Shown piece after piece: positions 1,285 to 51,383 of a stretch of DNA of 64,000 bases. Position numbers and translations under genes: made by a program. The stretch is taken from the IMG/VR virus record IMGVR_UViG_3300044568_003163, positions 186,001 through 250,000 of that record. The stretch is one strand, 5' to 3'. The notes under the pieces were generated by a model. That model saw only the letters and a list, made by a program, of their open reading frames with translations. It was not told the origin of the DNA and ran no database searches. Each line of letters opens with the position of its first letter. The first letter of the stretch is position 1.

Positions 1285-1343
1285 TCATAAAGTAACATAA
1301 AGTTCTACAAAAAGAAAACTCTAGAACTGAAAGTTATTAACAA
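1285..1343 (-). promoter_or_regulatory. Early-type promoter: TACTTTAT box plus upstream TTGTTAATAAC box at 48-bp offset
   Basis: GTTATTAACAA at 1333-1343 (+); degenerate box at 1285-1294 in the same register as the other copies. Confidence 0.5.
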
Positions 1344-1628
1344 TTAGCTATTAATTTGTACAACTCTTTCGGATGATTCTATTTTTGAAAAATCACCAGT
1401 TTGTAAATCTACAATTAGTTCAGTAACTAATTGTTTGATGTCCATATGATCGAAGTTTTGTAAACGATTCCATGAGAGTTCATGTCTGGATTCAATTCCA
1501 TTAACATATAACTTATAAGTCTCAGTCATTTGTCCATCTTCGGTCACGAGTTTAACATCTTGACCAAATTCTTGTTTGATACGCTGAGCCACTAGGTCAA
1601 CGTATCTTTCTTGTGTTTCTTTACTCAT
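1344..1628 (-). CDS. Hypothetical protein
   Basis: ORF abutting neighbours in operon. Confidence 0.75.
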   Translation of the reverse strand: MSKETQERYVDLVAQRIKQEFGQDVKLVTEDGQMTETYKLYVNGIESRHELSWNRLQNFDHMDIKQLVTELIVDLQTGDFSKIESSERVVQINS

Positions 1629-2488
1629 TATTCTGCGCTTACTGCTCTACCTACTTGTTTAGTCCAATCTAAGTCTGTTCTAACTTCAGTATTTTTATCT
1701 ATAGTTGCACATAACATAGTAGTGCTAATATTCATACCATTTGCTAAGAATTGCAAAGCTGCAATATCTTTAGGAAAGCAATGTCCACCAAATCCAAAAT
1801 CTCCATCAGGTCCTGGAACCGACCAATGCGAGTTACCTAATCGATCATCATATCTAGCATATTCAATTACTTTGTCGTAATCAATACCTAAGCCTTGACA
1901 TATTTGATAAATTTCATTTGCATAAGAAACTTTCATTGCTAAGAATGTGTTAGTTACATACTTAATAGTTTCTGCAATTGTAGAAGAAGTTTTAATGATT
2001 GGCACTTTAGGAAATGCCTTTGCGAAAATAGCTTTTACTCTTGTACTTCCTGGCCTTTCACCACCTACAATAATTCGATTTTGATTTTTATAATCTTCGT
2101 TTGCATTTGCCTCAGTTAAGAATTCTGGATTGAAAACGATATCTAAATCTTGATAGATTGAATTTAACATATTAGTAGATCCTGGTGGAATTGTAGATTT
2201 GATAACCACTATGTAGCCTGACTTATTAAGTGCTTTCACACATTCAGCAATTTCATTTAAAGCCGAAGCTAAAATTCCTAAATCACATTCACCTGATTTT
2301 TTCATTGGAGTTGGTACACATAAGAAAGTCATTTCTGTATTTTCTACAACTTCGAAAATACTTCTTACTGTACTGTCTTTTTTAGGGTCTTTGTCGAATG
2401 CAACTATATCATAATAGTTTTTCATTCCTTCTCGAACTGCCGAGCCTACAAAGCCTTGTCCGATGATACCGATTGTTTCTTTACTCAT
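1628..2488 (-). CDS. UDP-glucose/GDP-mannose dehydrogenase family protein (short, 286 aa)
   Basis: GIIGQGFVG NAD-binding motif, FLCVPTP, IKSTIPPG, FNPEFL and catalytic GFGGHCFPKD. Confidence 0.9.
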   Translation of the reverse strand: MSKETIGIIGQGFVGSAVREGMKNYYDIVAFDKDPKKDSTVRSIFEVVENTEMTFLCVPTPMKKSGECDLGILASALNEIAECVKALNKSGYIVVIKSTIPPGSTNMLNSIYQDLDIVFNPEFLTEANANEDYKNQNRIIVGGERPGSTRVKAIFAKAFPKVPIIKTSSTIAETIKYVTNTFLAMKVSYANEIYQICQGLGIDYDKVIEYARYDDRLGNSHWSVPGPDGDFGFGGHCFPKDIAALQFLANGMNISTTMLCATIDKNTEVRTDLDWTKQVGRAVSAE

Positions 2489-2672
2489 AATTTTCTTTAT
2501 TTATAGTTCTACCAAATTTTTCATCTGTCCAAGTTTTCATTTCTTGCATAGATTCATCTCCTTCTTCAAATTCATATATGTCCATCTCATCGCATAATGA
2601 GCAAGCTTCATAAAAATTATCTAATAATTTTTGTAGAGTTTCTTTTTTGATAATTACAAATCCATTTTCCAT
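2481..2672 (-). CDS. Hypothetical acidic protein
   Basis: ORF coupled to neighbours. Confidence 0.65.
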   Translation of the reverse strand: MENGFVIIKKETLQKLLDNFYEACSLCDEMDIYEFEEGDESMQEMKTWTDEKFGRTINKENYE

Positions 2673-2673
2673 T

Positions 2674-3084
2674 TTATTTTTTATTTAGTTCTTCAATTAA
2701 TTTACCTACTTTAGTTCTACTCTTTTCTCCGATAGGAATTGGATTTCCTTCTTCGTCAATATGTACAAATTTTATATGAGTTTTCAGCACTAAAGTTTGC
2801 TTACCAGTGTAAACATTATGTGCTCTCGCTTCAAGATACATTGTAATTGATGTATGTCCTAAAGCACTTGGATGACCATATATTTTTAGCAATTGGCTTT
2901 CTTTAGCCGGCTTTTCGAATACACATTTATCGATTGATACAGTGACCATTCGAGGAGAATCACACATTTGCATGGAATAACCTGCAGCTGCAGCATCAAT
3001 CCATGCAAGTAATTTCCCACCAAATAAATTACCGTGGAATCCAAGGTCAGATTTCTTAATAGGATGTGTGTTTAATAATTCCAT
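2674..3084 (-). CDS. Acyl-CoA thioesterase (hotdog fold, YciA-like)
   Basis: HGNLFGGKLLAWIDAAA and VTVSIDKCVFEKP motifs. Confidence 0.85.
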   Translation of the reverse strand: MELLNTHPIKKSDLGFHGNLFGGKLLAWIDAAAAGYSMQMCDSPRMVTVSIDKCVFEKPAKESQLLKIYGHPSALGHTSITMYLEARAHNVYTGKQTLVLKTHIKFVHIDEEGNPIPIGEKSRTKVGKLIEELNKK

Positions 3085-3737
3085 TACGATTTTACTTCTT
3101 CTCTATCTTCTTCTGTAAAACTTAATACTGCATCTAACTCTACTTTTGAAGCATTAACATTCATTTTAGCTGATCTAAAATTAGTTAATTTGTTTGAGAA
3201 GTTCATGTACATTTTACTGTTTGAAGCATCATTTGCGTTATAAGTCATAGCGTTATTAGCAGAAATACCCATATCACCACCAGCTTTAATTGCATCTTGA
3301 TTTGCTGCTAAGAACAAGAAATTCCATCCTTCTTTCTTTTTAGCTTCAATAGACTTGAAAACTCCATCTCTGTTAAATTCTCTACTTGCATTTTCCATAC
3401 CATCTGTAATGATTACCATTACGACATCATTCTTAGTTTTAACTTCTGCAATGGTTCTACCAATTGCATCGTACAATGCAGTCATTGCTCTAGGAACAAA
3501 AGTTTCACCTAAAATCAAGTCTTTTACATGTTTGATGTCTAGATTAGAATAATCTACTTGATATTGGTTGTCAAATTGTACTAATGTAAGATTTGCTTCA
3601 CCTTCTGCGGCTCTTTGTTCTTTAATAAATGAATTGAATCCATGTACGGTAGATCGACCTATGCTTTCCATAGATCCACTTCTATCTAAAACAACGATAA
3701 TGTCAGTTGCTTTGATTTTTTGTTTTGTTTTTTTCAT
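3084..3737 (-). CDS. von Willebrand factor A domain protein
   Basis: MIDAS motif VVLDRSGSM, MTALYDAIG, VIITDGMENAS. Confidence 0.9.
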   Translation of the reverse strand: MKKTKQKIKATDIIVVLDRSGSMESIGRSTVHGFNSFIKEQRAAEGEANLTLVQFDNQYQVDYSNLDIKHVKDLILGETFVPRAMTALYDAIGRTIAEVKTKNDVVMVIITDGMENASREFNRDGVFKSIEAKKKEGWNFLFLAANQDAIKAGGDMGISANNAMTYNANDASNSKMYMNFSNKLTNFRSAKMNVNASKVELDAVLSFTEEDREEVKS

Positions 3738-5014
3738 TAGTTATTTAGTTTAGCTTCGATTTTTTCATCAGATTCATACCCTATTAAAGAGAATTGTGAT
3801 GGATCGTATTCTGAAATATCGTCTCTTTCGTCGATATAATGATTATTTTTGTCGAATTGATTAATTTTTAATTTTGGCAGTGGATGACCATATCTCGTGA
3901 TTTGTTCAGCCGCAGCTGTTATATGATTATTATACAAATGAGTATCACCTAACATTCCAATCAACTCATCTGGAATCATATTTACTTCTTTTGCAATGAT
4001 TTCTAAAAGAAGTCCATAAGATGCAATATTAAATGGCAAACCTAATAGAGTATCTACTGATCTTTGAGACCACATTAACGAAATAGCTCTTTCTGGAACT
4101 ACTCGAGTCTTAGAAAGTTTCTTTTCGAACTTAGCATAGAATTCCTTTTCTTCAGCTCTTACCTTAGCAGCTTCTTCATATCGCAAAGCCTTAACATAAG
4201 CACTTTTAATTAGTAAGATTCCTCTGAGTTCTTGTTTTTCTTCAGGTGTACCTAATCGGTCAACTAACTCGGATTCACTTAATTTACGAGTATATAATTG
4301 AAATCCAATATGACAAGGAGGTAGCACCGCTTTATCAACATCTGCTACATTCCAAGCATTAAGTAAAAGTCTTCTAGAATCAGGATTTGTTCGTAAGTCT
4401 TTAATCAAATTAGCAATTTGATCGAACGATTCAGGTTTGTAAAATAAACCTTGACGAGCATCTCTATTTTCTTCATCTAAAGCATCAGAATTAAAAAAGA
4501 AATCTTTATCAACACCTTCCCAACTTCTCCATTGCTTACCGTAGATAGGACCTAAATCACCAAACATTGAATTGAAATCGTCGTTTGCAAGAATATCTCT
4601 TTCGAATTCTTCTACTGTTAATTTAACTATCTTAGGAATTGCAACTACTTCTGCAACTTTTTGTGCATTTTCAGTAGTAGGATTTGTGTATTTTTCTTGA
4701 AGAGATTCGACCCATTTCTCATATTTCTTATAAGCGTCACCGGTCCAAATATGACAATTGTTTTCTAATAAATATCTTAAATCAGTTCTACCTTGTAAGA
4801 ACCACATTAGCTCAGTTACCATTGTTTTAAATGCTAACTTTTTAGTAGTTATTGCAGGAAAGCCATCTGTCATATCATGTCTAATCATATAACCAAATAT
4901 GCTTCGAGTTCCTACTCCAGTTCGGTCACCTTTAAAATTACCATGGTGCATGATTGTTTGCAATAAGACCTTGTATTGATGGTCTAATTTGTTTGCTGAG
5001 TTTCCTATTTCCAT
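3737..5014 (-). CDS. thyA: Thymidylate synthase with two insertions
   Basis: DRTGVGT, TTKKL, ELMWFLQG, DLGPIYGKQWR, PPCH, QRSVD..LGLPFNIASY, GDTHLYNNH. Confidence 0.95.
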   Translation of the reverse strand: MEIGNSANKLDHQYKVLLQTIMHHGNFKGDRTGVGTRSIFGYMIRHDMTDGFPAITTKKLAFKTMVTELMWFLQGRTDLRYLLENNCHIWTGDAYKKYEKWVESLQEKYTNPTTENAQKVAEVVAIPKIVKLTVEEFERDILANDDFNSMFGDLGPIYGKQWRSWEGVDKDFFFNSDALDEENRDARQGLFYKPESFDQIANLIKDLRTNPDSRRLLLNAWNVADVDKAVLPPCHIGFQLYTRKLSESELVDRLGTPEEKQELRGILLIKSAYVKALRYEEAAKVRAEEKEFYAKFEKKLSKTRVVPERAISLMWSQRSVDTLLGLPFNIASYGLLLEIIAKEVNMIPDELIGMLGDTHLYNNHITAAAEQITRYGHPLPKLKINQFDKNNHYIDERDDISEYDPSQFSLIGYESDEKIEAKLNN

Positions 5015-15597: not shown

Positions 15598-16200
15598 TTA
15601 CATTTCGTATTGTTCTTTAAGAATACGTTTTCCACGAGAAATACGATTCTTAACAGTATGAAGTGGTATTTCAAGTTTTTCTGCAATTTCTTCATATTTC
15701 AAATCATTGAAGATTTTTTCTTCGATTACAACTCGATAATCTTCAGGCAATGTACTGAATAAAGTTCGTAAACGAGTTAAATTATCTTCATGTTCTCGTT
15801 TGTCTTCGATTGCAACTAAATCATCAACGTAACTATCGATTGAATCGAATTCGATTTTAGAAAGTAAGTTTTTGTTTTCTGAGTTTTCGACATCAGTCAT
15901 AAAAGTTACTTTTCTCTTTTTACGATTTCGCAATTCCATACAAGAATGAGTGTATGCAATTCGATAGATCCATGTTGAAATATGCCATTTTGGATCGTAT
16001 GTGTCGATTTTATTGTAAGCAACGGTCATTACTTCAGACACAAGGTTTTCTACGTCATCAGTATTTTTTACGATGCTGTAGATGTAATTGTAAAGTCCTG
16101 GTCGAATCCTATCGTACAATTCTTTGAATGATTTCTCGGAACGAGTGGTTTTGAATTTGAATCCTAAGTCTTTTAATGAATCTGCTTTTACTTTCGCCAT
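15598..16200 (-). CDS. ECF-type RNA polymerase sigma factor
   Basis: Region 2 (DDVENLVSEV...YDPKWHISTWIYRIA) and region 4.2 (LKYEEIAEKLEIPLHTVKNRISRGK). Confidence 0.9.
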   Translation of the reverse strand: MAKVKADSLKDLGFKFKTTRSEKSFKELYDRIRPGLYNYIYSIVKNTDDVENLVSEVMTVAYNKIDTYDPKWHISTWIYRIAYTHSCMELRNRKKRKVTFMTDVENSENKNLLSKIEFDSIDSYVDDLVAIEDKREHEDNLTRLRTLFSTLPEDYRVVIEEKIFNDLKYEEIAEKLEIPLHTVKNRISRGKRILKEQYEM

Positions 16201-16230: not shown

Positions 16231-16289
16231 TACAAATATAATAAAAGTTTCTTTGAAATGAAACTTTATTAGTGATTAGTTATTAACAA
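16231..16289 (-). promoter_or_regulatory. Early promoter TATATTTGTA with upstream TTGTTAATAAC box (48-bp offset)
   Basis: Matches Bacteroidota -7 consensus TAnnTTTG; upstream box at 16279-16289. Confidence 0.7.
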
Positions 16290-17039: not shown

Positions 17040-17098
17040 GACAAATATAACAAATTTAAGTGATAATTAAAAATTTTAGAGACTGAAGTTATTAACAA
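17040..17098 (-). promoter_or_regulatory. Early promoter TATATTTGTC with upstream TTGTTAATAAC box (48-bp offset)
   Basis: GACAAATATA at 17040-17049 and GTTATTAACAA at 17088-17098 (+). Confidence 0.7.
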
Positions 17099-19737: not shown

Positions 19738-22700
19738 TTAGAACATAGATACTTTAGTCTTAACTGTAACTTGAGATAAAGCAGCTACCATAGCAGTTTC
19801 TATATCTCTTGCGGATATAGAAGCTCCTGGTTTAGAAGATGCATGAACTATTGGTTTTTCTTTCATAGCTTTTCCTGCAGGAGTAGCAGCAGTAGGAGTA
19901 GAAGCAGTTTCTGTACCACCAGTTGCACCAGCACTTGAACCTGAATCTTCATTAAGTTTCTTAAGTCCATTTAATAAATCTTCAAAAGCCTTTTCAATAG
20001 ATTCTGCAATTTTTTCACCAATAACTTCAGGCGATTTAGACATAATAGCTAATGATTTCATCATTGAGTCGGTTGTTGTAAGTTTTTCTAAGTCCATGCC
20101 ATTAACATGACCTTTGAATAACTGCATAGATTTTTGAATTTTGTCGAAATTCACTGCTACTTTGTCTAATGAATTTTTAGGAGAAGCCATCGTAACAATG
20201 TTAGATGTAAACTTGTCCATATATTCTAATTTCTTAGGTAAACCTTTATTTAATGCAGGATCGAATACTTTAAATATCGAACTTGTGAAATTTTGGAAAT
20301 TTAATGTGGCTTTATCGGTAGATTCTAATTTAGAAAATGTATTAATTCCAGTCGACAAAGATGACATTATTTTAATCATACTAGGTAAATTATTAAGAGC
20401 TCCATTAATAACGTCTTGATTTTTATTATAGAAATCTCCTACATTATAAACTTCAGTACCAAATAAAGAAAATCCCTTTAAATTATTATTAGCCTTTTCG
20501 AATATTGCTAAATCGGAAAATTTAACAATAGACTTAGACATATCTAATAATATCTTAATCATATTAGGTAGAGTACTAAGAGCTCCGTTGATAATACCTT
20601 TGTGAGTTTCGAAATATCCTCCTATTTTATAGATTCCTGTACCGAACGTAACTAATTTAGGTATAGTTTCAATTGCTTTATCGATACTATCTAATTTAGA
20701 AAATGTTGTAACTGATTCTGCTAATGAAGACATAGATTTTACCATTTTAGGTATAGAACTTATACCACCATCAATGGTTTCAGCATGTTGCTTATAAAAA
20801 ACTCCGACATTATAGATTCCTTTACCTATAATCATCATTACTGAATTGATAGTTGTTCCTGCCTTTTTAAGCATAGCATCTGTTATAGCTACTGGAGTTC
20901 CTGGTACTAATTTAGTATTTGTGCCTGTACCTACTGCAGTCATTGGAGTAATTGTACCAGTAGCAATTTTTATTACAGAATCAGTAACTTTAGCAACTAC
21001 ATCTCCAACTCCAGAGATAGCCTTTATACCTTTTGCGATATATCCATCTCCCCAGAAAGAAGAAGAATCATCCTCTTTTTTACCTATATCATAAAATCCA
21101 GTAGCTATAACTTTAAGGATATCCATTATTGTAGTAGCAGCATTAGTTAAATCTTTATCTGAAAGTATTTTTGGTTTTCCTGGTACTAGTTTAGCTTTAG
21201 AGGTTCCACCATCAATTAAATCAAAAGTGGGAATTTCTCGTTTAGCCATCATTAGAACTGAATCTACTATGTTTTTAAGATTTTCTCCTACTCCGGCTAA
21301 AGCTTTAACACCTCTAGCAATAAAACCACCAGCGAAAACTCCTTCAGAAGCTGCTTCATCTTTACCAATATCACTAAACGCTTTAGCTACAACTCCGATA
21401 ACAGTAGCTATACTTTTACCAGCAGATTCAATTTCCTTTTCACCTATTTTGGTTACACCTTTAGGTACTAATTTAGCTTTCGAAGTACCAGCATTAACAA
21501 CCTCAAATTCAACAAATTGCATAGTAGCAAATTGCTTTACACCTGCTGCAAGAGAAACAATAGTATCTCCTGAATTTTTAAGAGATGCAACACCAGCAGA
21601 AACAAAACCTCCGCCGAATACCATATCATATAAAGGATTTCCTGATGGTTGTCCTTTATCGAGTCTTCCTACTAATGCAAATGGTTCAGCTATTGCAGTA
21701 ATAACTTTTGCCATTCCGTTAGCCGCATTAGTAAAATCAGATTCACCTAATTTTCTTCTTGATTTTATAACTAACTTAGCTTTTGAAGTTCCTGCTCCAA
21801 TAACTTCATATTCATTTACTTCTAAATTTGCCCATGCTTTAACTCCTTCGGCTAATGACGATAGCACATTACCTGCCATACTAAGTGAAAGTATACCAGT
21901 CATCAAATCAATTGGATCTATATTAATTCCTAATTTTTTCTGTCTTTCTTTATCTGTAACTATTGTAAATGCTTTTGCAATAGAACCTATAGTTGATTCC
22001 AAAGCAACTCCATCTTCTGGAGTAAAACCAGAAGTTTTAAATATAGTTAGTCCTTTAGATATTGCAATTAATGCAATACCTGCACCTACCATTGCTGGAA
22101 CGGTTATGGTTAATAAGGCTGCTCTAGCTGCTGCTTGGCCAGCAAATTTAAGTCCTTCGAGAACTCCTCCAGGGAATCTACCTCCTAAGAATCCGTTAAT
22201 TATTGAACTTAATCCATATTCTAAATTATCTCCATCTTCTTTATTAAATCCAGCACTTTTAAATATCGCTAATGCACCAGTTATAGGTAATAAAGCTACC
22301 GATGCAGCTGTCATTGCAAGTGAACCTAATAGTATAAGAGGAGAACCTAAACCAGCAAGTGCCATAGAACCTGCCAAACTTTTAACTGATGCACCTAATG
22401 CATCTGCATCAGGAATTGTCATTCCGGCAGTTTTAAATACGGCAAGAGCACCGGTTATAGGTAATAGGGCTACTGAAGCTACTAACATCGCAGCTGAACC
22501 TAAAAGAATAAGTGGAGAACCTAAACCAGCAAGTGCCATTGAACCAGCTAAACTTGAAATAGATAAACCTAATGCTATCGCATCATCTTTTGTTACTCCT
22601 ATAGTTTTAAATACTGCAAGTGCTCCAGATATAACTAATAGAGAAACTCCAGCTAAAATCATCGAGGCTGAACCTAATGCAATAAATATAGCACCAGCAC

Positions 22701-25566
22701 CAGCAGCAGCCATTGCAAGTCCTAAACCTACAACAATTGCACCTAATATTAAAGCATCTTCAGTAGTAACACCTGCTTTTTTAAATACTAAAACTCCTGC
22801 AGCAATAACAACTAATGCAATTCCAGCAAGAATCATTACTCCAGCACCAAGACCAATTTCTACGAAATTATCTCCGGCTATTTTCATTGCTAGTCCTAGA
22901 CCTGCAACAATAGCACCTAATAAAATGGCATCGCCAACTCCTACACCGGATTCTTTAAATTTAGTAAGAGCGTATGCTAATATTAATATTGCAATAGAAG
23001 CAAATCCTAATACCATAGAACCTAATCCTATTTCTTTCCAATATTGACCGAAAAGATACATCGCCATTCCAGTTACGGCTAAAATTCCTCCTAGTAATAA
23101 AATATCTGTTACCTGTAAGTTTATTGATTGAAACATCGCTAAACTATATGTAAAGAATAAAATAGAAAGAGCCATAAAAGATAAAGCCAATGTTCCCATT
23201 GCAATAGTTTTCCAATTCTTACCTATTTCATATGCAATAAATGCAAGTAATCCTATTGCCAATCCAGTAAATAAAACTGCCATAGGTGTGACCGAAGCTG
23301 CAAATAACATTACAACTGATCCTATAATTAATGCACCGAGTGCAAATAAAGTTAATCCAATTACTGCTTTTGCAATATTTCCTAAGCTTTTATTTAACAT
23401 TTCTCCTACTTGTTTAGCAATCCAAGCAATAAGTCCAATCATTATACCAAAAGCTATTACTTGTAAAACTCCTGCTGCTCCTACTGATTGTGCAAAATGA
23501 ATAACTAATTGAGTTATCAATACAAGTCCTAACATAAATAAGGACATAGCTATTAGAGTAGATCCTTTCATATTAGCGCCACCCATAGCTTCAATAACCA
23601 TTGTAGTAGTTTTTGCTAATATATAAGTCATCAAACCAAATAATAATATAGATTTAAGAGACTGAGGTGGATTTTGCATTGCCTTTGAAATAACAACTAA
23701 AGATACTGCTTGTATTAAACCTGTCACTGCCGCAGATAAAAGATCCATATTAGTTAAATCAGTCTTAGACTCACCTACCTTTTTAGCTAACATAAGGGTT
23801 ATTTGAGATAGGATAAAAATAGCTCCAGTAAATAAAACAATATTTAATGCGACTGTCGTCAAATCGTTTTGAGTATTAAATGCCATAATTGTTGCTGCAG
23901 CAGTAACTAACACTCCAAGTATAGTAGCTATAACCATTACGGTTTGAACATCACCTTCAGTAACACCAGCATCTTTTATTCCTTGATTAACTGCAGTAAT
24001 TCGTTTAACCATAAATCCAAGAACCATAGCACCAACTAATACAAATGGAGCTAATAATCCGGCAATCACACACATAGTTAATAAAGTACCAATAGAAAAA
24101 CTTAATGCAACTACAAATACTGCAGCAGCTAAAATATTTTCTGAATCTTTAACTACTTCCGAAATACCTCCTATTAAAGTTTTAATTGCAATATTAGTGA
24201 TTTTCACACCTAATATAATAAAAGGATTCCAAATAGCAGCTCTCCTTAAAGCACTTATAAGAATATCGACACCATATGCTAATAATGTAAATGAAAGTAC
24301 ACTCTTAATCGCAGTTTCATTATCAATTCCTTTAGAAGTAAGTAACATTGCTCTAACTGCTCCAGATAGATCTTCAGCTCTTCTAGTTAACACATTAGGT
24401 TTACTAAATAGGCCAGAAAGAAATCCAGGAGTTAAGGCTTTTATTAATTTGCCTATATTAGAAGCCGATAATACATTAATAGCAAAAACAGATTTTATAA
24501 TAGTTTCTGGTATTAATCTTGAACCTGTCTTAAGTAAAATATTTACAGCCTTAGATAAATCTTCGGCTCTTCCAACCATAGATCCACCACCAAAAAGTTT
24601 AGATAAAAACGATTCAGAAAGAACTTTTATCAATTTACCAATATTAGAAGCCGATAACATTGCATATGCAGTTATAGATACTGCAGCAGTTTTAAGATTG
24701 ATTCGATTTCCTGCTTTTAATAAGATATTTGTTGCATCTGAAATATTTTGAGCTAATCTAGACCAAAAACGACTTAAAATAAAATTCTTTATCGTCATAT
24801 TCTTATTAAAGAATTCAACAAATTCACCTAGTTTCGAAGCTACTATTAAATTATATGCAGCAATAGAAACTGCCGCTTGAGTTAAATCTATTCCTTTACC
24901 GGCATTAAGTAATATTCGAGTCGTATTTGATATAACAATTGCAAAATCCTCATACATTGAACCGAAAATCATATTCTTAATAGTCAATGTAGAACCTAGA
25001 AAATCAACAAATTCTTTTAATTTAGACGAACTAATTAATCCATATATTAGTAATGAATTTGCCGCAGTTCCCATATCCACTTCTTCAGACACAGAAAGTA
25101 ATTTAATCATTGCTTGATTAAGATAACCTGCACCTTCTACTAGGAAATCTCCAAACAAATAAGAAACTGCTAATACTTTAACTAATTTCATTAATGCTTC
25201 GGGAATTGAACCTATGGCAGCAGCTAATCCACCATCATTGGCTGCACCTCCACCACCGACTGAGTCGCTTTTAGATAGTTTAGCAACTTTAATTTCAATA
25301 GATGATAATAAAGAGTTTTGTATAACCGAATGTTGTTCTATTCGATTCATAAGTTCTGCACTTATTCCAAATACGGATTTAAGGTCAGATAAAAGAGTTG
25401 TATGCTTCTTTAGCTCGAGAGAAACGTCATTTTTTACAACGGTTTCTATCGAGCCAAGAAGTATTAAGGAATTGTCTTCTGCTAGTTTAGTAGCACTTAC
25501 CATTGCATCCATCTTCTTAAGAATGGATAACATTGCTTGATTTACACCTTCTGCCCTAACAGCCAT
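19738..25566 (-). CDS. Tail tape measure protein (1942 aa)
   Basis: Very long Ala/Gly/Leu-rich helical protein with internal repeats, directly downstream of tail chaperone genes. Confidence 0.8.
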   Translation of the reverse strand: MAVRAEGVNQAMLSILKKMDAMVSATKLAEDNSLILLGSIETVVKNDVSLELKKHTTLLSDLKSVFGISAELMNRIEQHSVIQNSLLSSIEIKVAKLSKSDSVGGGGAANDGGLAAAIGSIPEALMKLVKVLAVSYLFGDFLVEGAGYLNQAMIKLLSVSEEVDMGTAANSLLIYGLISSSKLKEFVDFLGSTLTIKNMIFGSMYEDFAIVISNTTRILLNAGKGIDLTQAAVSIAAYNLIVASKLGEFVEFFNKNMTIKNFILSRFWSRLAQNISDATNILLKAGNRINLKTAAVSITAYAMLSASNIGKLIKVLSESFLSKLFGGGSMVGRAEDLSKAVNILLKTGSRLIPETIIKSVFAINVLSASNIGKLIKALTPGFLSGLFSKPNVLTRRAEDLSGAVRAMLLTSKGIDNETAIKSVLSFTLLAYGVDILISALRRAAIWNPFIILGVKITNIAIKTLIGGISEVVKDSENILAAAVFVVALSFSIGTLLTMCVIAGLLAPFVLVGAMVLGFMVKRITAVNQGIKDAGVTEGDVQTVMVIATILGVLVTAAATIMAFNTQNDLTTVALNIVLFTGAIFILSQITLMLAKKVGESKTDLTNMDLLSAAVTGLIQAVSLVVISKAMQNPPQSLKSILLFGLMTYILAKTTTMVIEAMGGANMKGSTLIAMSLFMLGLVLITQLVIHFAQSVGAAGVLQVIAFGIMIGLIAWIAKQVGEMLNKSLGNIAKAVIGLTLFALGALIIGSVVMLFAASVTPMAVLFTGLAIGLLAFIAYEIGKNWKTIAMGTLALSFMALSILFFTYSLAMFQSINLQVTDILLLGGILAVTGMAMYLFGQYWKEIGLGSMVLGFASIAILILAYALTKFKESGVGVGDAILLGAIVAGLGLAMKIAGDNFVEIGLGAGVMILAGIALVVIAAGVLVFKKAGVTTEDALILGAIVVGLGLAMAAAGAGAIFIALGSASMILAGVSLLVISGALAVFKTIGVTKDDAIALGLSISSLAGSMALAGLGSPLILLGSAAMLVASVALLPITGALAVFKTAGMTIPDADALGASVKSLAGSMALAGLGSPLILLGSLAMTAASVALLPITGALAIFKSAGFNKEDGDNLEYGLSSIINGFLGGRFPGGVLEGLKFAGQAAARAALLTITVPAMVGAGIALIAISKGLTIFKTSGFTPEDGVALESTIGSIAKAFTIVTDKERQKKLGINIDPIDLMTGILSLSMAGNVLSSLAEGVKAWANLEVNEYEVIGAGTSKAKLVIKSRRKLGESDFTNAANGMAKVITAIAEPFALVGRLDKGQPSGNPLYDMVFGGGFVSAGVASLKNSGDTIVSLAAGVKQFATMQFVEFEVVNAGTSKAKLVPKGVTKIGEKEIESAGKSIATVIGVVAKAFSDIGKDEAASEGVFAGGFIARGVKALAGVGENLKNIVDSVLMMAKREIPTFDLIDGGTSKAKLVPGKPKILSDKDLTNAATTIMDILKVIATGFYDIGKKEDDSSSFWGDGYIAKGIKAISGVGDVVAKVTDSVIKIATGTITPMTAVGTGTNTKLVPGTPVAITDAMLKKAGTTINSVMMIIGKGIYNVGVFYKQHAETIDGGISSIPKMVKSMSSLAESVTTFSKLDSIDKAIETIPKLVTFGTGIYKIGGYFETHKGIINGALSTLPNMIKILLDMSKSIVKFSDLAIFEKANNNLKGFSLFGTEVYNVGDFYNKNQDVINGALNNLPSMIKIMSSLSTGINTFSKLESTDKATLNFQNFTSSIFKVFDPALNKGLPKKLEYMDKFTSNIVTMASPKNSLDKVAVNFDKIQKSMQLFKGHVNGMDLEKLTTTDSMMKSLAIMSKSPEVIGEKIAESIEKAFEDLLNGLKKLNEDSGSSAGATGGTETASTPTAATPAGKAMKEKPIVHASSKPGASISARDIETAMVAALSQVTVKTKVSMF
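22260..22620 (-). repeat. Roughly 58-aa tandem repeat within tape measure
   Basis: SLAGSMALAGLGSPLILLGS occurs twice; DNA GAGAACCTAAACCAGCAAGTGCCAT at 22341 and 22515 (174 bp apart). Confidence 0.8.
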
Positions 25567-27046: not shown

Positions 27047-27187
27047 TAGTACTTGATTTTCTATTATATATCCAGGAAAGATAATAAAATAATATAAAAA
27101 TCAAATAATATTTTATCTAAAAAGTTGATGATATATGTGACATCTAAGGAACGGTATTATGAGATATAAGATATCATGTCAAACAAC

Positions 27188-31084: not shown

Positions 31085-31153
31085 TGTAAATATAACAAAA
31101 AAACTCGATACTTAAAAATATCGAGTTAGAAAGTTTCAAAAAGTTATTAACAA
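31085..31153 (-). promoter_or_regulatory. Early promoter TATATTTACA, intervening hairpin, and TTGTTAATAAC box (58-bp offset)
   Basis: Boxes at 31085-31094 and 31143-31153; CTCGATA/TATCGAG hairpin between. Confidence 0.7.
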
Positions 31154-36457: not shown

Positions 36458-36476
36458 ATTGCTATTATTTTTTTAT

Positions 36477-36484
36477 TATATATC
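36477..36484 (-). promoter_or_regulatory. Late box GATATATA, family [GTA]ATA[TA]ATA (also 6725, 15496, 27065, 32122, 32400, 33068, 39652, 40417, 42702, 53524, 56707, 58482, 61141, 62815)
   Basis: T4-late-like (TATAAATA) octamer shortly upstream of sheath, tube, capsid, protease, portal and terminase genes. Confidence 0.7.
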
Positions 36485-39631: not shown

Positions 39632-39670
39632 ATAATCTTGTAGTATTGTATTATATATCCTTTATACAAA

Positions 39671-46724: not shown

Positions 46725-47993
46725 TTATTTCATTAGGTCTTCCCAAAATGATGGATTGAATCCATCACCTGCCGGAGTTGAAGTTATTACTACATCCTTA
46801 TTTACCATTGGATCGGCTTTTGGCATTGCCGAACGGAAAATTCCAGATTCATTAAATGATTCGGCTTTTTCTTTTGTGTATGTGGTACCTTCAAGAATTT
46901 TATCTTTGCTCATAAGCGAATGTAAAGCCATTGCAGAAAACGAACTTAATGGAATAGATTCGATGTGTTCGAACATATCGCTAATAACCTTTTCCGGAAT
47001 GCAACGTTTATGTAGCATCATTAAATCTCGATTCAATAACCAACGTTCTTTGATTTCGGCTAATGGTTTGTCGATTTTAATTACTCGTTGAGCAATTGAA
47101 ACGATTTGGTCGATATATTCTTCGTTAAAGAAATGTGATTGATTGATGTAAATTTTATCATCTTTAAATTCGGACATAATTGCAGCAGCATGAGTATCAG
47201 TTACTTTGAATGTGCGTTCTTTACCAGATTTATCAGTTTTAATTGTAGTGTGTAATGGTGGAACGTTATCGCCTGAATCGCCTACTAAGATTTTTCTAAA
47301 GACAAATTCATTGACATTGACTTCGTCTAATTTCATTTTATTTAAGCGTACAATATCCTTAAGGTGAGATTTTGCATTTGATACAATATCCTTAGGTAAG
47401 TTAAAGATATCGGTAGGCATTTCTTCGACTTCAATCCATTGTTTAAATCCTGGAAAAACATGAAGGTCTTTGTCGAATTTATTGTAATAAACAGTATTTG
47501 CACCTGATGAATTGTCCTTATTTACTAATTGAAGTAAATCATTATCGCCTGAGATAATTAAAGCATTTTGACCATTTTGATTTAAGTAAGAAGACCAAGC
47601 AAATATTAAATCATCGGCTTCGGCACCTTTAACTCGAGAAATAATAACACCTAGTTTTTCAAGTGCTTTAGCAAATTCATCGTGAACTTCATAAATCATA
47701 GACCAATTGATTTCATTGGTTTTGATGCGATTTGCTTTGTATTCGGCAGCTGGATGATAAGATTTACGCCATGAGCTTGAATCGACGGTATATACGATTC
47801 GATGAGTAATTCCTTCGAAACGTTTTATTTCGGCAGCAAAATCGACAGCTAATTTCCATAGCAATAGATTTTTATCTTCTTCAGGTTCGTCAATAAAATT
47901 AAAAGGTTTTCCTTGTTTAATTTTTTGACCGATATGAAAAGTTTTATGAAGCCAAAAATTGGCATCGAATTCCAAGGTATATTTACCTGTCAT
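46725..47993 (-). CDS. rnh: 5'-3' exonuclease / RNase H (T4 rnh-like flap nuclease); start corrected to 47993
   Basis: FDAN, VDSSSWRK...YKANR, GAEADDLI, ISGDNDLLQL, LVGDSGDNVP. Confidence 0.88.
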   Translation of the reverse strand: MTGKYTLEFDANFWLHKTFHIGQKIKQGKPFNFIDEPEEDKNLLLWKLAVDFAAEIKRFEGITHRIVYTVDSSSWRKSYHPAAEYKANRIKTNEINWSMIYEVHDEFAKALEKLGVIISRVKGAEADDLIFAWSSYLNQNGQNALIISGDNDLLQLVNKDNSSGANTVYYNKFDKDLHVFPGFKQWIEVEEMPTDIFNLPKDIVSNAKSHLKDIVRLNKMKLDEVNVNEFVFRKILVGDSGDNVPPLHTTIKTDKSGKERTFKVTDTHAAAIMSEFKDDKIYINQSHFFNEEYIDQIVSIAQRVIKIDKPLAEIKERWLLNRDLMMLHKRCIPEKVISDMFEHIESIPLSSFSAMALHSLMSKDKILEGTTYTKEKAESFNESGIFRSAMPKADPMVNKDVVITSTPAGDGFNPSFWEDLMK

Positions 47994-48015: not shown

Positions 48016-48074
48016 TACAAATATAACAAAATTAAGTGTTATATAAAAATGTTTTAATGGAAAGTTATTAACAA
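48016..48074 (-). promoter_or_regulatory. Early promoter TATATTTGTA with TTGTTAATAAC box (48-bp offset)
   Basis: Boxes at 48016-48025 and 48064-48074. Confidence 0.7.
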
Positions 48075-48553
48075 ATAACAACTGCTCTAGTTCGTGTAGA
48101 GTTTACTAAACGATAGGTTAAGTCAATATAAATAGCTCCAGTATCTCCATTTATGTTTACAATATAATCAGTAGGTCTAATTAATTCCCAGAAGATCGAA
48201 GTATTTTCTTCGGTTTCAGGATCTATGAACGCGGAATTAACTCTCCATAATTGAATTTGAACATCCGCTAAGGAAGGAGCCATCCTTCTACCGATTAAAA
48301 ATCCTGGAGTATATAGAGATATTTCTGCCGCTTCGATTATAAGTCTTTGATTTCCTGCAGAAATCCATTCCTTAATAAATTTTGATGTTGCTGCAGTGGA
48401 TCCAGTAGGTCCAGTAATTCCAGGTAATCCATTTATACCGGTTGCTCCTTGCGGACCAGTAGGTCCTTCTGATGATGGTAAGTATACCGGATTTCCAAAA
48501 AAATCTACTAGGATTCCATTTATTAAATATACTTGTTGACTACTTGTAGGCAT
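48068..48553 (-). CDS. Small protein with short collagen-like G-x-x stretch
   Basis: GPTGPQGATGINGLPGITGPTGST. Confidence 0.75.
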   Translation of the reverse strand: MPTSSQQVYLINGILVDFFGNPVYLPSSEGPTGPQGATGINGLPGITGPTGSTAATSKFIKEWISAGNQRLIIEAAEISLYTPGFLIGRRMAPSLADVQIQLWRVNSAFIDPETEENTSIFWELIRPTDYIVNINGDTGAIYIDLTYRLVNSTRTRAVVIC

Positions 48554-48576
48554 ATGTTTCTTTTCTTATATCTATC

Positions 48577-49530
48577 TTACGAACGAACTATATGCTGAAT
48601 TTTATAAACTAATGAAAGCATACAAATTACCGGATCGATAACAAATCGAAGTTCATATGAATGTCGATTAACTTCATAACATATTTCACCGGCTTTTCTC
48701 ATTAATTGAGGACGTTCTAATTGAATGTATTCGATGAAATCTGTACCTAAAGATTGAACCACATCATCGACTTTTGATGAGTAATTAGAAACTAAGTATT
48801 GATAGTTTTTAACTTCATCATTTGAAGGATTGAAGATGTGTTCGTAAAGGTCTTTGAAAACTCCGTGGAATTTTTTGACATCTTCGGCAGTAATTTTAGT
48901 TTTGCCTTCAGCATGATAACCTTGTAAGATATTGATAATTGAACGCAAATCTGGAAACTTACGCTTAACTAATTCAACTAAAGCTTCTTTCTCAATATCC
49001 ATACCTTCGGTTTTGATGATATCGTAAACTCGCTTATAGTATTTCTTTTCAATTTCAGCTTCTTCCTCTTCGGAGAAATCAAAATTAAAGCATTCAAAAC
49101 GAGATTGAATGTTGTCTGGAATTTTATTGATGTAATTGCAGGTAGCAATAAAACGAGCAGTTTTTTCAAATTGTTCAATTGTGCCACGTAAAGCTTTCAT
49201 GTATGCATCAGAGACACCATCGAACTCATCTAATATAACCACTTTTAATTTTCTTTCGCCATCAATAACAGATAACGTAGAACAGAATTCAGATATTTTT
49301 GTACGAACAGTATCTACACCGGTTTCAACTGAACAGTTGATGTACATAGTTGGATTATCTTTTGAAATAGCTTTTGCAGTCGATGTTTTACCTGTGCCTG
49401 GAGAACTATGAAATAAGAAATTCATATACAAACCATTTCTAAGTTTGGTTGCAATTCTTTCAGGTAATATCAATTCATCTAATGTGGATGGACGATATCT
49501 TTCGGTCCATAGAGCTTTTTTAGGATTCAT
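48577..49530 (-). CDS. gp44: Clamp loader large subunit (gp44/RFC-like)
   Basis: LWTERYRP, SSPGTGKT, VILDEFD, FIATCN, IQSRF, FPDLR. Confidence 0.93.
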   Translation of the reverse strand: MNPKKALWTERYRPSTLDELILPERIATKLRNGLYMNFLFHSSPGTGKTSTAKAISKDNPTMYINCSVETGVDTVRTKISEFCSTLSVIDGERKLKVVILDEFDGVSDAYMKALRGTIEQFEKTARFIATCNYINKIPDNIQSRFECFNFDFSEEEEAEIEKKYYKRVYDIIKTEGMDIEKEALVELVKRKFPDLRSIINILQGYHAEGKTKITAEDVKKFHGVFKDLYEHIFNPSNDEVKNYQYLVSNYSSKVDDVVQSLGTDFIEYIQLERPQLMRKAGEICYEVNRHSYELRFVIDPVICMLSLVYKIQHIVRS

Positions 49531-49583
49531 ATAAATAGTTTAGAGTTATTATATGATAGTAATCCTAAAAGGTATTAACAAAT

Positions 49584-49985
49584 TTATGAGTTCAGCTCTT
49601 GTAAAACTTCCTTAAGATTTCTAGCAGTTCGATCATTGTATTTTTGTTGAGAGATTCTATCTCTTTTTTCAATTACTCTATTGAAAAGAGCTTTGACTTC
49701 GTCCACTTTTTTCTCTGGTAAATCTACATGATAGGAAAATTTACCATTTTGAAGAATAATGAATTTGTCGAAAATTTGAACATAGTATTTTGAAGTTTCT
49801 ACCGTGTATTTTTTCTTGTCGAAGATATAACGTAAAGCAGTATTAGGTTCACAAATCAATTTATTGACGATCCGCAAACAATCAATTTGTTTATCTTCGG
49901 TTAATTCATTATTAGAAACCGTTAATAATTTTACAATTTTTCTCTTTACTCTTCGTGCTCTTACTTGTAATCTTACCGGTCTCAT
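49584..49985 (-). CDS. Hypothetical basic protein
   Basis: ORF in early operon. Confidence 0.7.
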   Translation of the reverse strand: MRPVRLQVRARRVKRKIVKLLTVSNNELTEDKQIDCLRIVNKLICEPNTALRYIFDKKKYTVETSKYYVQIFDKFIILQNGKFSYHVDLPEKKVDEVKALFNRVIEKRDRISQQKYNDRTARNLKEVLQELNS

Positions 49986-50179
49986 TATTTGTTAATTTTT
50001 TCAAATGAGCAAAATAATAAGAAAGCACCTATCAAAGTAGTGCACATTGCAGTTGCAAGTTCATTAAGGGTACCAGCGAACGGTATGTATTTTTGAGCGG
50101 TTCCAGTTAATAAGGAATATGTAACCCAAAACGCGATTAATGAACCTAAGGCCGGAAAGATGTTGATGGTGATTTTCAT
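49985..50179 (-). CDS. Small membrane protein
   Basis: Two hydrophobic helices; early box at 50202-50211. Confidence 0.7.
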   Translation of the reverse strand: MKITINIFPALGSLIAFWVTYSLLTGTAQKYIPFAGTLNELATAMCTTLIGAFLLFCSFEKINK

Positions 50180-50263
50180 AGTTCTTTGTTTTAATTAGAT
50201 ATGTAAATATAATCAATATTGCGGAAACTAAAAAACTTTAAATGTTAAAAATCTGTTAAAGTT

Positions 50264-50740
50264 TTATGCAGCCTTTTCATATTGGAACAATGCTTTACCC
50301 CATATAGGAGCAATTTTCTGGGCAATTCTCTTACCGTAAGCTGAGTACAAAATACCTTGATTCCAAAGAAAGTGCTCATAATCATAACCGTATTGTTCTA
50401 CCGCTCCTTCAGCGATCCAACGTAAGGCAGTAATCTCATCATTAGCACCCATTTGGATAGTATTAGTAATAAGGGTTTGGAAGGCTTTATCAGCTTCAAA
50501 TTCAGCAGCCAATTCCTCTTCACGATTATCAGCACAAACCTGTTCGAAACGATCAAAATCAGCCTCTAACTCCTCAGTGGTTAATGCATGTACATTAATA
50601 GTACGAGGACGGAAACCATAAGCATCTTTATGGAAATCCGAATATAAGAGAAGCATATTCTCTCGATGAGACAACTCATAGTTATGAGCTAATTTAGATT
50701 CAAGTTCTTTTTGTTCGTGGATTTGTGATTCTGTCATCAT
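50264..50740 (-). CDS. Hypothetical early protein
   Basis: YSDFHKDAYGFRPR motif; early promoter at 50763. Confidence 0.8.
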   Translation of the reverse strand: MMTESQIHEQKELESKLAHNYELSHRENMLLLYSDFHKDAYGFRPRTINVHALTTEELEADFDRFEQVCADNREEELAAEFEADKAFQTLITNTIQMGANDEITALRWIAEGAVEQYGYDYEHFLWNQGILYSAYGKRIAQKIAPIWGKALFQYEKAA

Positions 50741-50762
50741 AATGTGTAGTTTTAATTAGATA

Positions 50763-50821
50763 TGTAAATTTAATCAAATAATTAGAAACAAGGAAATTTA
50801 TTTCAATAAAGTTATTAACAA
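50763..50821 (-). promoter_or_regulatory. Early promoter TAAATTTACA with TTGTTAATAAC box (48-bp offset)
   Basis: Boxes at 50763-50772 and 50811-50821. Confidence 0.65.
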
Positions 50822-50822
50822 T

Positions 50823-50996
50823 TTATAGACACCATTTTATGCTTTTAACTTCGGATTCATACGAAAGCCTATATTCAAGTTCTTTCCAAATCTTAGTAAG
50901 TGAAGGACATTTGCAATACTTAGTAGCAATAAGTGTTTCTACGTTGTTTATTGTAATGTAAAAATTCCAATTTTTAGGTTCGTTAAATCCTTTCAT
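50823..50996 (-). CDS. Small hypothetical protein (57 aa)
   Basis: Hand-translated MKGFNEPKNWNFYITINNVETLIATKYCKCPSLTKIWKELEYRLSYESEVKSIKWCL; fills the gap. Confidence 0.65.
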   Translation of the reverse strand: MKGFNEPKNWNFYITINNVETLIATKYCKCPSLTKIWKELEYRLSYESEVKSIKWCL

Positions 50997-51001
50997 AATA
51001 C

Positions 51002-51292
51002 TTAGTATATGTAGTTAAGAGCAATATTCATAGAAGTTGAATTGAAATCTGATGGTATTGGTTTGATTACTTCCCAAACTCCATATTTAACGTTTTTGAT
51101 AAATTCTAATCTTCGTAAATTTGATAGATATTGACGAGTACGATATCCAGGATTATTGTTCCATCTCTTCCAATTAGTAACATTTTCGATACCAGTGGTA
51201 TGTTCGATTAAATCTGATACCTTAAATTGTTGACCGTTACGTTCGTTTAAAAATGTTTTAACTGACGTGAATAATGAATTTTGATTTGACAT
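51002..51292 (-). CDS. Hypothetical early protein, possible winged helix
   Basis: TRQYLSNLRRLEFIKNVKYGVWEV pattern. Confidence 0.65.
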   Translation of the reverse strand: MSNQNSLFTSVKTFLNERNGQQFKVSDLIEHTTGIENVTNWKRWNNNPGYRTRQYLSNLRRLEFIKNVKYGVWEVIKPIPSDFNSTSMNIALNYIY

Positions 51293-51314
51293 AATGTGTA
51301 GTTTTAATTAGTTA

Positions 51315-51383
51315 TGTAAATATAAGCAAAAAATCCGACACTAGGAAATGTCGGATTAATTATTTTCAAAAAGTTATTAACAA
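51315..51383 (-). promoter_or_regulatory. Early promoter TATATTTACA, hairpin, and TTGTTAATAAC box (58-bp offset)
   Basis: Boxes at 51315-51324 and 51373-51383; CCGACA/TGTCGG hairpin between. Confidence 0.7.

Follow-up and report, generated by a model that had tools for sequence, protein, structure and literature searches.

A phased DnaA-box-like site upstream of host-type promoters in a lake-water phage of Bacteroidota

Sites and promoters in the 64-kb window

We analyzed a stretch of 64,000 nucleotides (hereafter referred to as the window; positions 186,001 to 250,000 of IMG/VR record IMGVR_UViG_3300044568_003163) from a 294-kb lake-water phage of Bacteroidota. The window contains a 200-aa phage sigma-70-family factor (15598-16200, − strand; Pfam Sigma70_r4_2, E 2e-14, and Sigma70_r2, E 2e-9; phrog_1740) and a 5'-3' exonuclease gene (46725-47993), and the word GTTATTAACAA occurs in it exactly seven times, at 1333, 16279, 17088, 31143, 48064, 50811 and 51373. 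All seven copies are on the + strand, which is the non-coding strand; 0.11 occurrences are expected by chance and none of 100 shuffles reached seven. On the coding (−) strand, the word reads TTGTTAATAAC (hereafter referred to as the 11-mer), and it is followed by a TAnnTTT(G/A) box, corresponding to the Bacteroidota sigma-A -7 element, at a start-to-start distance of 49 nt (16279, 17088, 48064 and 50811) or 59 nt (31143 and 51373), the box at 49 nt from the 1333 copy being degenerate.

All the features described below are on the − strand. The 11-mer at 1333-1343 lies directly after the stop codon of ORF 1344-1628, and its degenerate -7 box, TACTTTAT (1287-1294), is overlapped by a late-type word, GATATAATAA (1279-1285). 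The 11-mer at 16279-16289 is the distal element of the promoter of the sigma-factor gene, which lies directly downstream of this module, with a -7 box, TATATTTG, at 16233-16240. The same box sequence is found at 17042-17049, 49 nt from the 11-mer at 17088-17098, in which case a terminator-like hairpin lies upstream of the 11-mer, and at 48018-48025, 49 nt from the 11-mer at 48064-48074. The internal TAA of this last copy is the stop codon of ORF 48068-48553, and the gene downstream is that of the exonuclease. The 11-mer at 50811-50821 is followed by TAAATTTA (50765-50772). In the 59-nt class, the 11-mers at 31143-31153 and 51373-51383 are followed by TATATTTA (31087-31094 and 51317-51324, respectively), and a hairpin plus a T run lies between the two elements at 31102-31127 (dG -13.0, z -4.3), where it is likely to be the intrinsic terminator of the upstream gene, and at 51332-51357 (dG -15.3, z -5.2). 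A sister promoter at 50204-50260 lacks the 11-mer but carries two TTTAACA words 11 nt apart (50243-50260), the first of which is again 49 nt before the -7 box (50204-50211). A one-mismatch copy of the 11-mer, TTGTTAATACC (49571-49581), has no -7 box and is followed by a late-type word at 49548-49554.

The observation made in an earlier sequence-only reading, which listed these seven sites with boxes at offsets of 48 bp (five cases) or 58 bp (two cases), is therefore confirmed. Its offsets are the same two classes, measured on the + strand with a box delimited 2 nt wider (we obtained 46 and 56 for the 8-mer itself), and the 10-nt step is correct.

Spacing across the genome and in diverged relatives

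Random spacing over the whole genome had been named in advance as an outcome that would count against a phased site. The 294-kb genome contains 37 TTGTTAAYAAC sites, all on the coding strand, and 34 of these sites have a TAnnTTT(G/A) box 48, 49 or 59 nt downstream (binomial P about 3e-73). In eight diverged relatives, 65 of 68 sites fall at 39, 48/49 or 58-61 nt and none falls at 40-47 nt; the 11-mer and the -7 box were fixed by that search, but the rest of the spacer differs widely between copies. The site is thus phased with the core promoter in 10-nt steps (39/49/59), at 4, 5 or 6 helical turns, both in this phage and in its diverged relatives, and the spacing varies only by whole helical turns, as at class I activator sites, although contact with RNA polymerase and promoter output were not measured. 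The extra 10 nt always lies next to the 11-mer, whereas the distance from the middle element of the module to the -7 box remains fixed.

On the coding strand, the module consists of the stop codon of the previous gene, the 11-mer, with its core TGTTAATAA centred near -56 (or -46 / -66), a filler of 0, 10 or 20 nt, a fixed middle element (ATTTyy..TGTC), often widened into the terminator hairpin of the previous gene, TTG-n-TTAnATTTG, which is the sigma-A -7 box, a short A-rich leader and the ATG. The consensus at the -33 position is ATTTyy, without the G of the TTTG element. In 16 of the 34 modules, a hairpin with a G+C-rich stem, a dG of -11.9 or lower and a z of -4 or lower is followed by a T run, as in an intrinsic terminator. 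The sequence-only reading associated the hairpins with the extra helical turn, but this link does not hold genome-wide: hairpins are just as common in the 48/49 class (13 of 26) and are missing from five of the eight sites in the 59 class, so they do not explain the additional turn.

A megablast search of GenBank phages with 22 kb of the sequence gave no match. Among the cultured or huge relatives identified by capsid similarity, Tenacibaculum PTm1 and pT24, Chryseobacterium MA9V-2, Flavobacterium MaF61, Prevotella Lak-A2, LR756500.1 and Sphingomonas PAU show no enrichment of the module, and no cultured relative carries it. The stretch is present in 24 sequencing runs, nearly all labelled as lake-water or freshwater metagenomes and none on record as RNA; no binding or expression data exist. 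A literature search for the 11-mer returned only primers and unrelated hits, and searches on Bacteroidetes DnaA boxes and on jumbo-phage promoters yielded nothing specific.

Host replication genes and a phage DnaA domain IV protein

The word is not specific to phages. With the same orientation and register, it precedes dnaN in Chryseobacterium, Epilithonimonas, Aquimarina and Flavobacterium, and also gyrB and dnaX. Of 102 bacterial matches to the 11-mer + N36-38 + -7 box with a downstream ORF, 66 precede dnaN, four gyrB and one dnaX, placing the word at promoters of the dnaA/dnaN replication regulon. Flavobacterium-type dnaN promoters have the core at 39 nt, and box pairs lie upstream of hup and dprA. 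The word is no commoner in three host genomes than the control word; it is therefore a specific site rather than a common host promoter element, and its invariant G and C positions also distinguish it from an UP element.

The core of the word belongs to a TTATNAACA box family, and in Bacteroidia these boxes sit where other lineages have canonical DnaA boxes. An orthologous dnaN-upstream box is TTATCCACA in one lineage and TTATCAACA in its sisters, and TGTT-type boxes pair with TGTG-type boxes at about 11 nt. Nevertheless, relative to the experimentally defined consensus TTATNCACA, the phage site TTATTAACA matches at only eight of nine positions, with A rather than C at position 6 in all 37 phage sites, and this position matters in E. 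coli. The same hosts use C-type boxes over their dnaA promoters, yet none of the 37 exact phage sites carries one, and conservation covers 11 nt plus TTT, which is more than the 9-nt DnaA footprint. All sampled Bacteroidia DnaA read DHATV where E. coli has DHTTV, and in those genomes TGTT-type boxes outnumber TGTG-type boxes 17:1 upstream of dnaN; however, this link between the DnaA helix and the box type comes from a single clade, and Chryseobacterium (DHSTV) breaks it.

Comparison with the origin boxes of the host had also been suggested beforehand. A syntenic AT-rich spacer next to rnr, at the GC3-skew minimum of Aquimarina and F. mekongense, holds four strict TTWTN[AC]ACA boxes in each genome, plus several matching at eight of nine positions, and nearly all are A-type. 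This spacer is a putative oriC only, as the assignment rests on GC3 skew and synteny in two Flavobacteriaceae genomes, and the true host of the phage is not known, so the comparison does not settle whether such boxes cluster in the origin of the host clade. Raw GC skew and gene-strand bias in 20-kb samples were too noisy, whereas GC3 skew split by gene strand was informative. Two earlier origin candidates, Aquimarina 742.9 kb and F. mekongense 1.362 Mb, proved to be ordinary promoter regions or a long gene, with no Rfam hit, and a nine-box cluster at Aquimarina 3.70 Mb lies on the terminus side and is therefore not the origin. The canonical TTATCCACA has 33 copies in F. mekongense, with no cluster and none next to dnaA.

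Outside the window, the phage encodes a 97-aa stand-alone DnaA domain IV protein (Pfam Bac_DnaA_C, 63.8 bits against a cut-off of 31.5, covering profile positions 3-66 of 69). It aligns over its full length to domain IV of solved DnaA structures (residues 355-444 of B. subtilis DnaA, 8btg), and its recognition helix differs from that of host DnaA (D433N). The promoter of its gene has the same layout as the sister promoter at 50204-50260, lacking the 11-mer and carrying two inverted partial boxes in the same register. Homologues occur in three phage sub-lineages, although a search for related loci with this protein found only near-identical copies. Records encoding the protein have 0.06-0.13 box sites per kb, whereas three complete 271-kb relatives with no Bac_DnaA_C match have 0.02 per kb. 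These three relatives nonetheless have six typical modules each, so the phage protein cannot be the universal reader of the site.

Interpretation and relationship to known systems

The explanation that we favor, with moderate confidence, is that TTGTTAAYAAC is the distal element of a composite promoter about 75 nt long, used by the phage for its pre-late genes, which include a sigma factor, nucleases, tRNAs and many small ORFs. The weak -33 region leads us to infer that host sigma-A RNA polymerase needs help from a protein bound to the 11-mer on one face of the helix. In this view, the core is the Bacteroidia form of the DnaA box, and its reader is most likely a protein with a DnaA domain IV: host DnaA, which appears to use the same layout at its own dnaN promoter, and/or the phage protein, which could take over, tune or shut these promoters and at the same time compete with DnaA at host boxes. 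The sequence architecture, the phasing, its conservation, the host parallels and the presence of the phage gene rest directly on the analysis, whereas binding, activation, timing and the choice between the two proteins are inferences; it has not been shown that DnaA, or anything else, binds the site or that binding activates transcription. The sequence-only reading, which proposed a phased activator site bound by host DnaA or another host or phage factor and boosting early transcription, including that of the sigma factor, is thus supported in part. The phasing, the identity of the -7 box and the position of the sigma-factor gene are borne out, and the kinship with DnaA boxes is better founded than the window alone could indicate, but the "early" status of these promoters is inferred only from their host-type -7 box and from the use of a different promoter word by structural genes. 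Its remark that coupling to host DnaA would be unusual is overstated, given the partial precedent in lambda.

Other explanations are less likely, but are not excluded. The phage protein might be the only relevant reader, with box-less promoters, including its own, firing first and the protein then switching on the box promoters, like a MotA-type middle-gene activator, in which case the resemblance to host dnaN promoters would be due to ancestry or mimicry. The layout of the gene's own promoter, the greater stringency of the phage 11-mer than of host boxes, the divergent recognition helix and the density of box sites are consistent with this possibility, but it is rendered doubtful by the three relatives with modules and no such gene, by the identical layout of host dnaN promoters in the absence of any phage protein, and by the lack of a known activation surface in a 97-aa DNA-binding domain. 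It is also possible, though somewhat less likely, that an unidentified host transcription factor other than DnaA, controlling replication genes (dnaN, gyrB, dnaX and hup), binds the word, and that the phage has copied its site. The word marks a small host regulon, deviates from the classical DnaA box at position 6 and has partial dyad symmetry (GTTA-n-TAAC; the variant TTGTTAACAA is a perfect palindrome), as do sites for dimeric factors. However, the same boxes crowd the AT-rich spacer at the skew minimum in two genera and replace or sit beside canonical DnaA boxes, the fixed orientation relative to the promoter fits an asymmetric site, and a DnaA domain IV gene in the phage is hard to explain otherwise.

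We consider it very unlikely that the boxes serve mainly as a datA-like sink titrating host DnaA and stopping host initiation, or as operators for shutting off early genes. About 37 boxes per genome, multiplied by the phage copy number, would bind much DnaA, DnaA represses as well as activates in model bacteria, and Aquimarina has a nine-box cluster away from the origin; but a sink requires neither a fixed orientation nor exact 10-nt phasing, a repressor site 40 nt upstream of the core promoter would be unusual, and the weak -33 region argues for a need for activation. The least likely possibility is that no protein factor is involved, the word being an UP-like contact for the RNA polymerase alpha subunit or an RNA-level signal in the 3' end of the upstream transcript, with spacing inherited by duplication of one cassette. 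The word does lie at -61 to -51, where UP elements act, directly follows stop codons (supplying the stop codon itself in four cases) and often precedes terminator hairpins. Against this, G and C positions are invariant, the word is not a common host promoter element, spacers have diverged freely while spacing and word are kept across lineages, the terminator at 17088 lies upstream of the word, and host dnaN sites are not in 3' UTR contexts of this kind. An IHF site was rejected because the TTR part of the consensus WATCAANNNNTTR is not conserved next to the sites. A phage RNA polymerase as the reader was not supported, as no Pfam beta or beta-prime match was found in the genome, although very divergent enzymes cannot be excluded.

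If a DnaA-type protein reads these sites, phage gene expression would be tied to the host's replication initiator, giving the phage a direct gauge of whether the cell is replicating, or a handle to stop it. A more far-reaching possibility, compatible with the data but unlikely on present evidence, is that a clade of freshwater Bacteroidota jumbo phages runs its whole pre-late programme through DnaA boxes, copying the architecture of the host dnaN promoter and encoding a DNA-binding-domain-only DnaA protein that both drives or tunes these promoters, as a MotA-like switch, and blocks host DnaA at oriC. This would also show that Bacteroidia DnaA, with Ala in place of Thr435, recognises a shifted box, TTATNAACA, and that the Flavobacteriaceae origin lies next to rnr, far from dnaA. 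The analysis yields three predictions for a poorly studied phylum: this box variant, this origin location and a DnaA regulon including dnaN, gyrB, dnaX and hup. The compact 75-nt module, in which stop codon, box, terminator and promoter overlap, could also serve as a strong and tunable promoter part for Flavobacteria.

DnaA boxes, and DnaA as a transcription factor (E. coli dnaA and nrdAB; the B. subtilis DnaA regulon), are already known, and the site described here resembles them in being an asymmetric 9-nt site found at replication-gene promoters, in pairs about one or two helical turns apart and in an origin-like AT-rich spacer. It differs at position 6 and in the presence of a single box per promoter, at a fixed upstream position and orientation, in about 37 phage promoters; binding has not been tested in any Bacteroidota. 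At phage lambda pR/ori-lambda, a host replication initiator is likewise used by a phage to boost its own transcription, with DnaA contacting RNA polymerase (Szalewska-Palasz et al. 1998, listed in PMC3985674). Lambda has a few weak boxes downstream of one promoter, whereas one strong box lies upstream, helically phased, at dozens of promoters here, and this phage also encodes a DnaA-domain protein. Class I activator-dependent promoters (CRP at -61.5, -71.5 and -82.5) have an upstream site that works only on one face of the helix and tolerates whole-turn shifts, as inferred here, together with a core promoter that, as here, has a weak upstream hexamer, but the centres here are near -46, -56 and -66, the site is asymmetric rather than a dyad, and the polymerase is of the Bacteroidota sigma-A type. 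In the T4 MotA/AsiA middle promoters, a small phage DNA-binding protein and a short box redefine a class of host-polymerase promoters, and a separate phage sigma factor reads late promoters of the TATAAATA kind; the MotA box replaces the -35 element at -30, whereas the box described here is 25-35 nt further upstream and also exists in host promoters. Finally, the Bacteroidota sigma-A promoter (TAnnTTTG at -12 to -5 and TTTG near -33; PMC9723704) shares its -7 box with 34 of the 37 modules, at a distance of 25-33 nt from the ATG, the modules differing in the absence of the G at -33 and in the presence of an added distal element.

Phage genome and organization of the promoter module

The window (bases 186001-250000) belongs to a 294,034-bp virus record rated 91% complete by CheckV. 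It has a GC content of about 32%, and 431 of 445 ORFs lie on the - strand. It encodes a sigma-70-family factor, a 5'-3' exonuclease, a tail sheath, both topoisomerase II subunits, a terminase, a head protease, a portal and the major head protein. A 1942-aa ORF (window 19738-25566) had no Pfam and no PHROG match. The head protein is 56% identical to that of an uncultured 462-kb phage, and 32-36% identical to those of the Prevotella Lak phages, Tenacibaculum PTm1/pT24 and Chryseobacterium MA9V. The DNA recurs in many lake-water metagenomes. This is therefore a freshwater jumbo phage of Bacteroidota.

The word GTTATTAACAA occurs seven times in the window (1333, 16279, 17088, 31143, 48064, 50811 and 51373), always on the + strand, against 0.11 occurrences expected, and the observation made in the sequence-only reading is confirmed. 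The genes run on the - strand, on which the word reads TTGTTAATAAC and is followed by TAnnTTT(G/A) at a start-to-start distance of 49 nt (four sites) or 59 nt (two sites). The distances of 48 and 58 bp initially proposed correspond to the same two classes, with a constant 2-nt difference in the way the box was delimited. The site at 1333 has a degenerate box at 49 nt (TACTTTAT), overlapped by a late-type word, GATATAATAA (the two together at window 1279-1294), and looks like an early promoter turned into, or doubled by, a late one.

The whole genome holds 33 exact copies of the word, with none on the other strand and no copy of the control word; the addition of the variant TTGTTAACAAC gives 37 sites. 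Random spacing genome-wide had been named beforehand as an outcome that would count against a phased site. We found that 34 of the 37 sites have the box at 48 (5 sites), 49 (21 sites) or 59 nt (8 sites), with a binomial P of about 3e-73 for a box word present at 0.0019 per nt. Seventeen of the 34 lie within 2 nt of the stop codon of the upstream ORF, and in four of these the ORF ends inside the word and uses its TAA. At least one phage tRNA gene lies just downstream of a box module (site 70859, in the 63-73 kb region of the genome), and the 11-mers at 70859 and 73493 directly follow tRNA 3' ends. A handful of sister promoters carry only the 9-nt core, two TTTAACA words in the same register, or nothing. 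In three promoters (window 50204-50260; genome 121272 and 104578), the 11-mer is replaced by TTTAACA-N4-TTTAACA, consisting of inverted partial boxes one helical turn apart, the first copy again lying 49 nt before the -7 box.

The anatomy of the module was anchored on the -7 box, which lies at -12 to -5 in Flavobacterium psychrophilum (PMC9723704). The consensus comprises the 11-mer at -61 to -51, followed by TTT; a filler; ATTTyy at about -37 and TGTC at about -28; TTG at -17; TTAnATTTG; and a TAtAA.TTAAA leader, with the ATG 25-33 nt after the start of the box. In the 59-nt class, the extra 10 nt (typically TTTTTGAAAATAAT) lies right after the 11-mer, and the middle element stays fixed to the -7 box. 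In 16 of the 34 modules, the middle element is widened into a strong hairpin followed by a T run, which looks like the terminator of the upstream gene. Thirteen of these modules are in the 48/49 class and three in the 59 class, so hairpins do not account for the extra turn, contrary to the association initially proposed. Structural genes (sheath, protease and others) use a different word, (G/C)ATATAA(T/C), 11-39 nt before the ATG (window 36475-36481, 61139-61145, 56705-56711, 39650-39656, 27063-27069 and others), and this is the only basis for calling the box promoters pre-late. This second word resembles T4 late promoters, and the phage sigma factor (window 15598-16200) is its candidate reader.

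Occurrence of the module in phage relatives and bacterial genomes

A scan of IMG/VR for the 11-mer, N36-38 and TTATATTTG returned 94 stretches from about 40 contigs. In 23 of these records, the word is abundant, strongly strand-biased and absent as a control word. In eight diverged records, 68 sites were read from the match coordinates, with distances of 39 nt (3 sites), 48 nt (7 sites), 49 nt (37 sites) and 58-61 nt (18 sites), together with three ambiguous early matches; none fell at 40-47 nt. Outside the two searched words, the spacer sequences differ widely between copies and records. Selection therefore keeps the word and whole-turn spacing. Among the cultured relatives examined, none was found to carry the module.

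The same scan, performed on one genome per prokaryote species, returned at least 120 stretches, nearly all from Bacteroidota. Of 102 stretches with a downstream ORF, 66 precede dnaN (Chryseobacterium, Epilithonimonas, Aquimarina and others), eight precede a Lon-like protein (by its N-terminus) in Tidjanibacter, four precede gyrB and one precedes dnaX. In F. mekongense and two further Flavobacteriales genomes, the core TGTTAATAA lies 39 nt before the dnaN -7 box. The 9-mer and the 11-mer are no commoner than control words in three host genomes; the word is therefore a specific site and not a general promoter part. Across Bacteroidia, dnaN is preceded by TGTT(A/G)A(A/T)AA, often followed about 11 nt later by a TGTG-type box, and one orthologous box reads TTATCCACA in one genome and TTATCAACA in its sisters. 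Pairs of TTAT(T/C)AACA about 20 nt apart precede hup in four genomes, and TTATTCACA next to TTATTAACA precedes dprA. The dnaA promoters of F. mekongense and Aquimarina (host loci L224 and L223) carry a C-type box, TT(A/G)TTCACA, fused to the -7 region, which suggests autorepression and shows that both box types coexist in one genome.

Probable kinship with DnaA boxes and a phage-encoded DnaA domain

We investigated whether the word belongs to the DnaA boxes of the host clade. In Aquimarina sp. SS2-1, GC3 skew, computed separately for genes on each strand, changes sign between 841 and 843 kb. At that point, an AT-rich spacer between divergent genes (contig C1, 841.3-842.7 kb; locus L428) holds four strict boxes (TGTTAATAA, TGTGAATAA, TGTTTATAA and TGTTGAAAA) and further copies at 8 of 9 positions. 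In F. mekongense, the cumulative corrected skew has a broad minimum near 696 kb, and a 77% AT spacer (contig C1, 686.3-686.9 kb; locus L513) holds TTTTCAACA, TTATAAACA, TGTTGAAAA, a tandem of TTATTAACA and TTGTTAACA 10 nt apart, and more near-copies. The flanking genes, which encode RNase R (rnr) and a cation-efflux protein, are orthologous between the two genera at 69% and 60% identity. Both spacers are far from dnaA and dnaN. This syntenic spacer, which lies at the GC3-skew minimum, is a candidate Flavobacteriaceae oriC, built mostly of TTATNAACA boxes. A comparison of the word with the origin boxes of the host had been suggested in advance; the host of this phage has not been identified and the origin is not proven in either genome, so that the clustering observed does not decide the matter. 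Nine further TTATNAACA-type boxes lie within 250 bp of a 1.15-kb spacer on the terminus side of the Aquimarina chromosome (contig C1, 3700590-3700850; positions 2097-2347 of locus L369), and may constitute a datA-like DnaA sink. Bacteroidia DnaA domain IV reads DHATV in the recognition helix where E. coli has DHTTV. In those genomes, TGTT-type boxes outnumber TGTG-type boxes 17:1 upstream of dnaN, whereas in lineages with DH(S/T)TV the ratio is 6:8. This fits a shifted box specificity, but rests on one clade, with Chryseobacterium as an exception.

Outside the window, a 97-aa ORF on the - strand of the phage genome (104285-104578) matches Pfam Bac_DnaA_C (63.8 bits, E 4e-18) and aligns over its whole length with domain IV of solved DnaA proteins. 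It is 34-39% identical to the closest Bacteroidia domains. Its recognition helix reads RDNHATV, sharing the Bacteroidia Ala and having Asn for Asp433; homologues with N/Q at 433 and G at 435 occur in two other sub-lineages of the phage clade. Weak relatives occur in gut phage contigs, a 282-kb Staphylococcus phage record (OR844989.1, 151331-151612, unannotated) and a Bradyrhizobium phage, none with a named function. Unannotated short frames (142-183 aa) matching only the C-terminal part of DnaA also occur in Bacteroidia genomes (genome G065, C8:109159-109416 and C42:8613-8816; genome G071, C3:404213-404416). The promoter of the phage gene lacks the 11-mer and has two TTTAACA words starting at the same 49-nt register. 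Records that encode the protein carry three to six times more sites per kb than three complete 271-kb relatives that lack such a gene, although the sample is small and not phylogenetically independent. Each of these three relatives nevertheless has six typical modules within 8 kb.

Possible mode of action and comparison with known systems

The sequence-only reading, which proposed a phased activator site bound by host DnaA or another host or phage factor, is partly supported. The analysis itself demonstrates a conserved composite promoter with a distal word phased in whole helical turns, the same layout at host replication genes, and a DnaA-domain gene in the phage; the box family also appears to behave like DnaA boxes in the host clade. 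From these findings, and in the absence of binding, start-site or timing data, we infer that host sigma-A polymerase initiates 5-7 nt after the -7 box, that the weak -33 region makes it depend on a protein bound at the word, and that this protein carries a DnaA domain IV. In this view, host DnaA could serve from the first minute, as it seems to do at dnaN, and the phage protein may later replace, boost or silence it, and would compete with DnaA at host boxes. We consider a DnaA-domain reader, with host DnaA involved, to be somewhat more likely than not. It is possible, but less likely, that the phage protein alone reads the word, and slightly more doubtful that another host factor does so. A role of the sites as a sink or operator appears improbable, and the absence of any protein factor more improbable still.

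In the literature searched, we found no description of this word, of a Bacteroidota DnaA-box variant, or of phage DnaA-domain-only regulators. The site differs from the strict DnaA-box consensus at position 6, and the promoter departs from the -33 rule of Bacteroidota promoters. In the reading favoured here, the word works like a class I activator site, and the system resembles the use of DnaA by lambda at pR (cited in PMC3985674) and the MotA scheme of T4.
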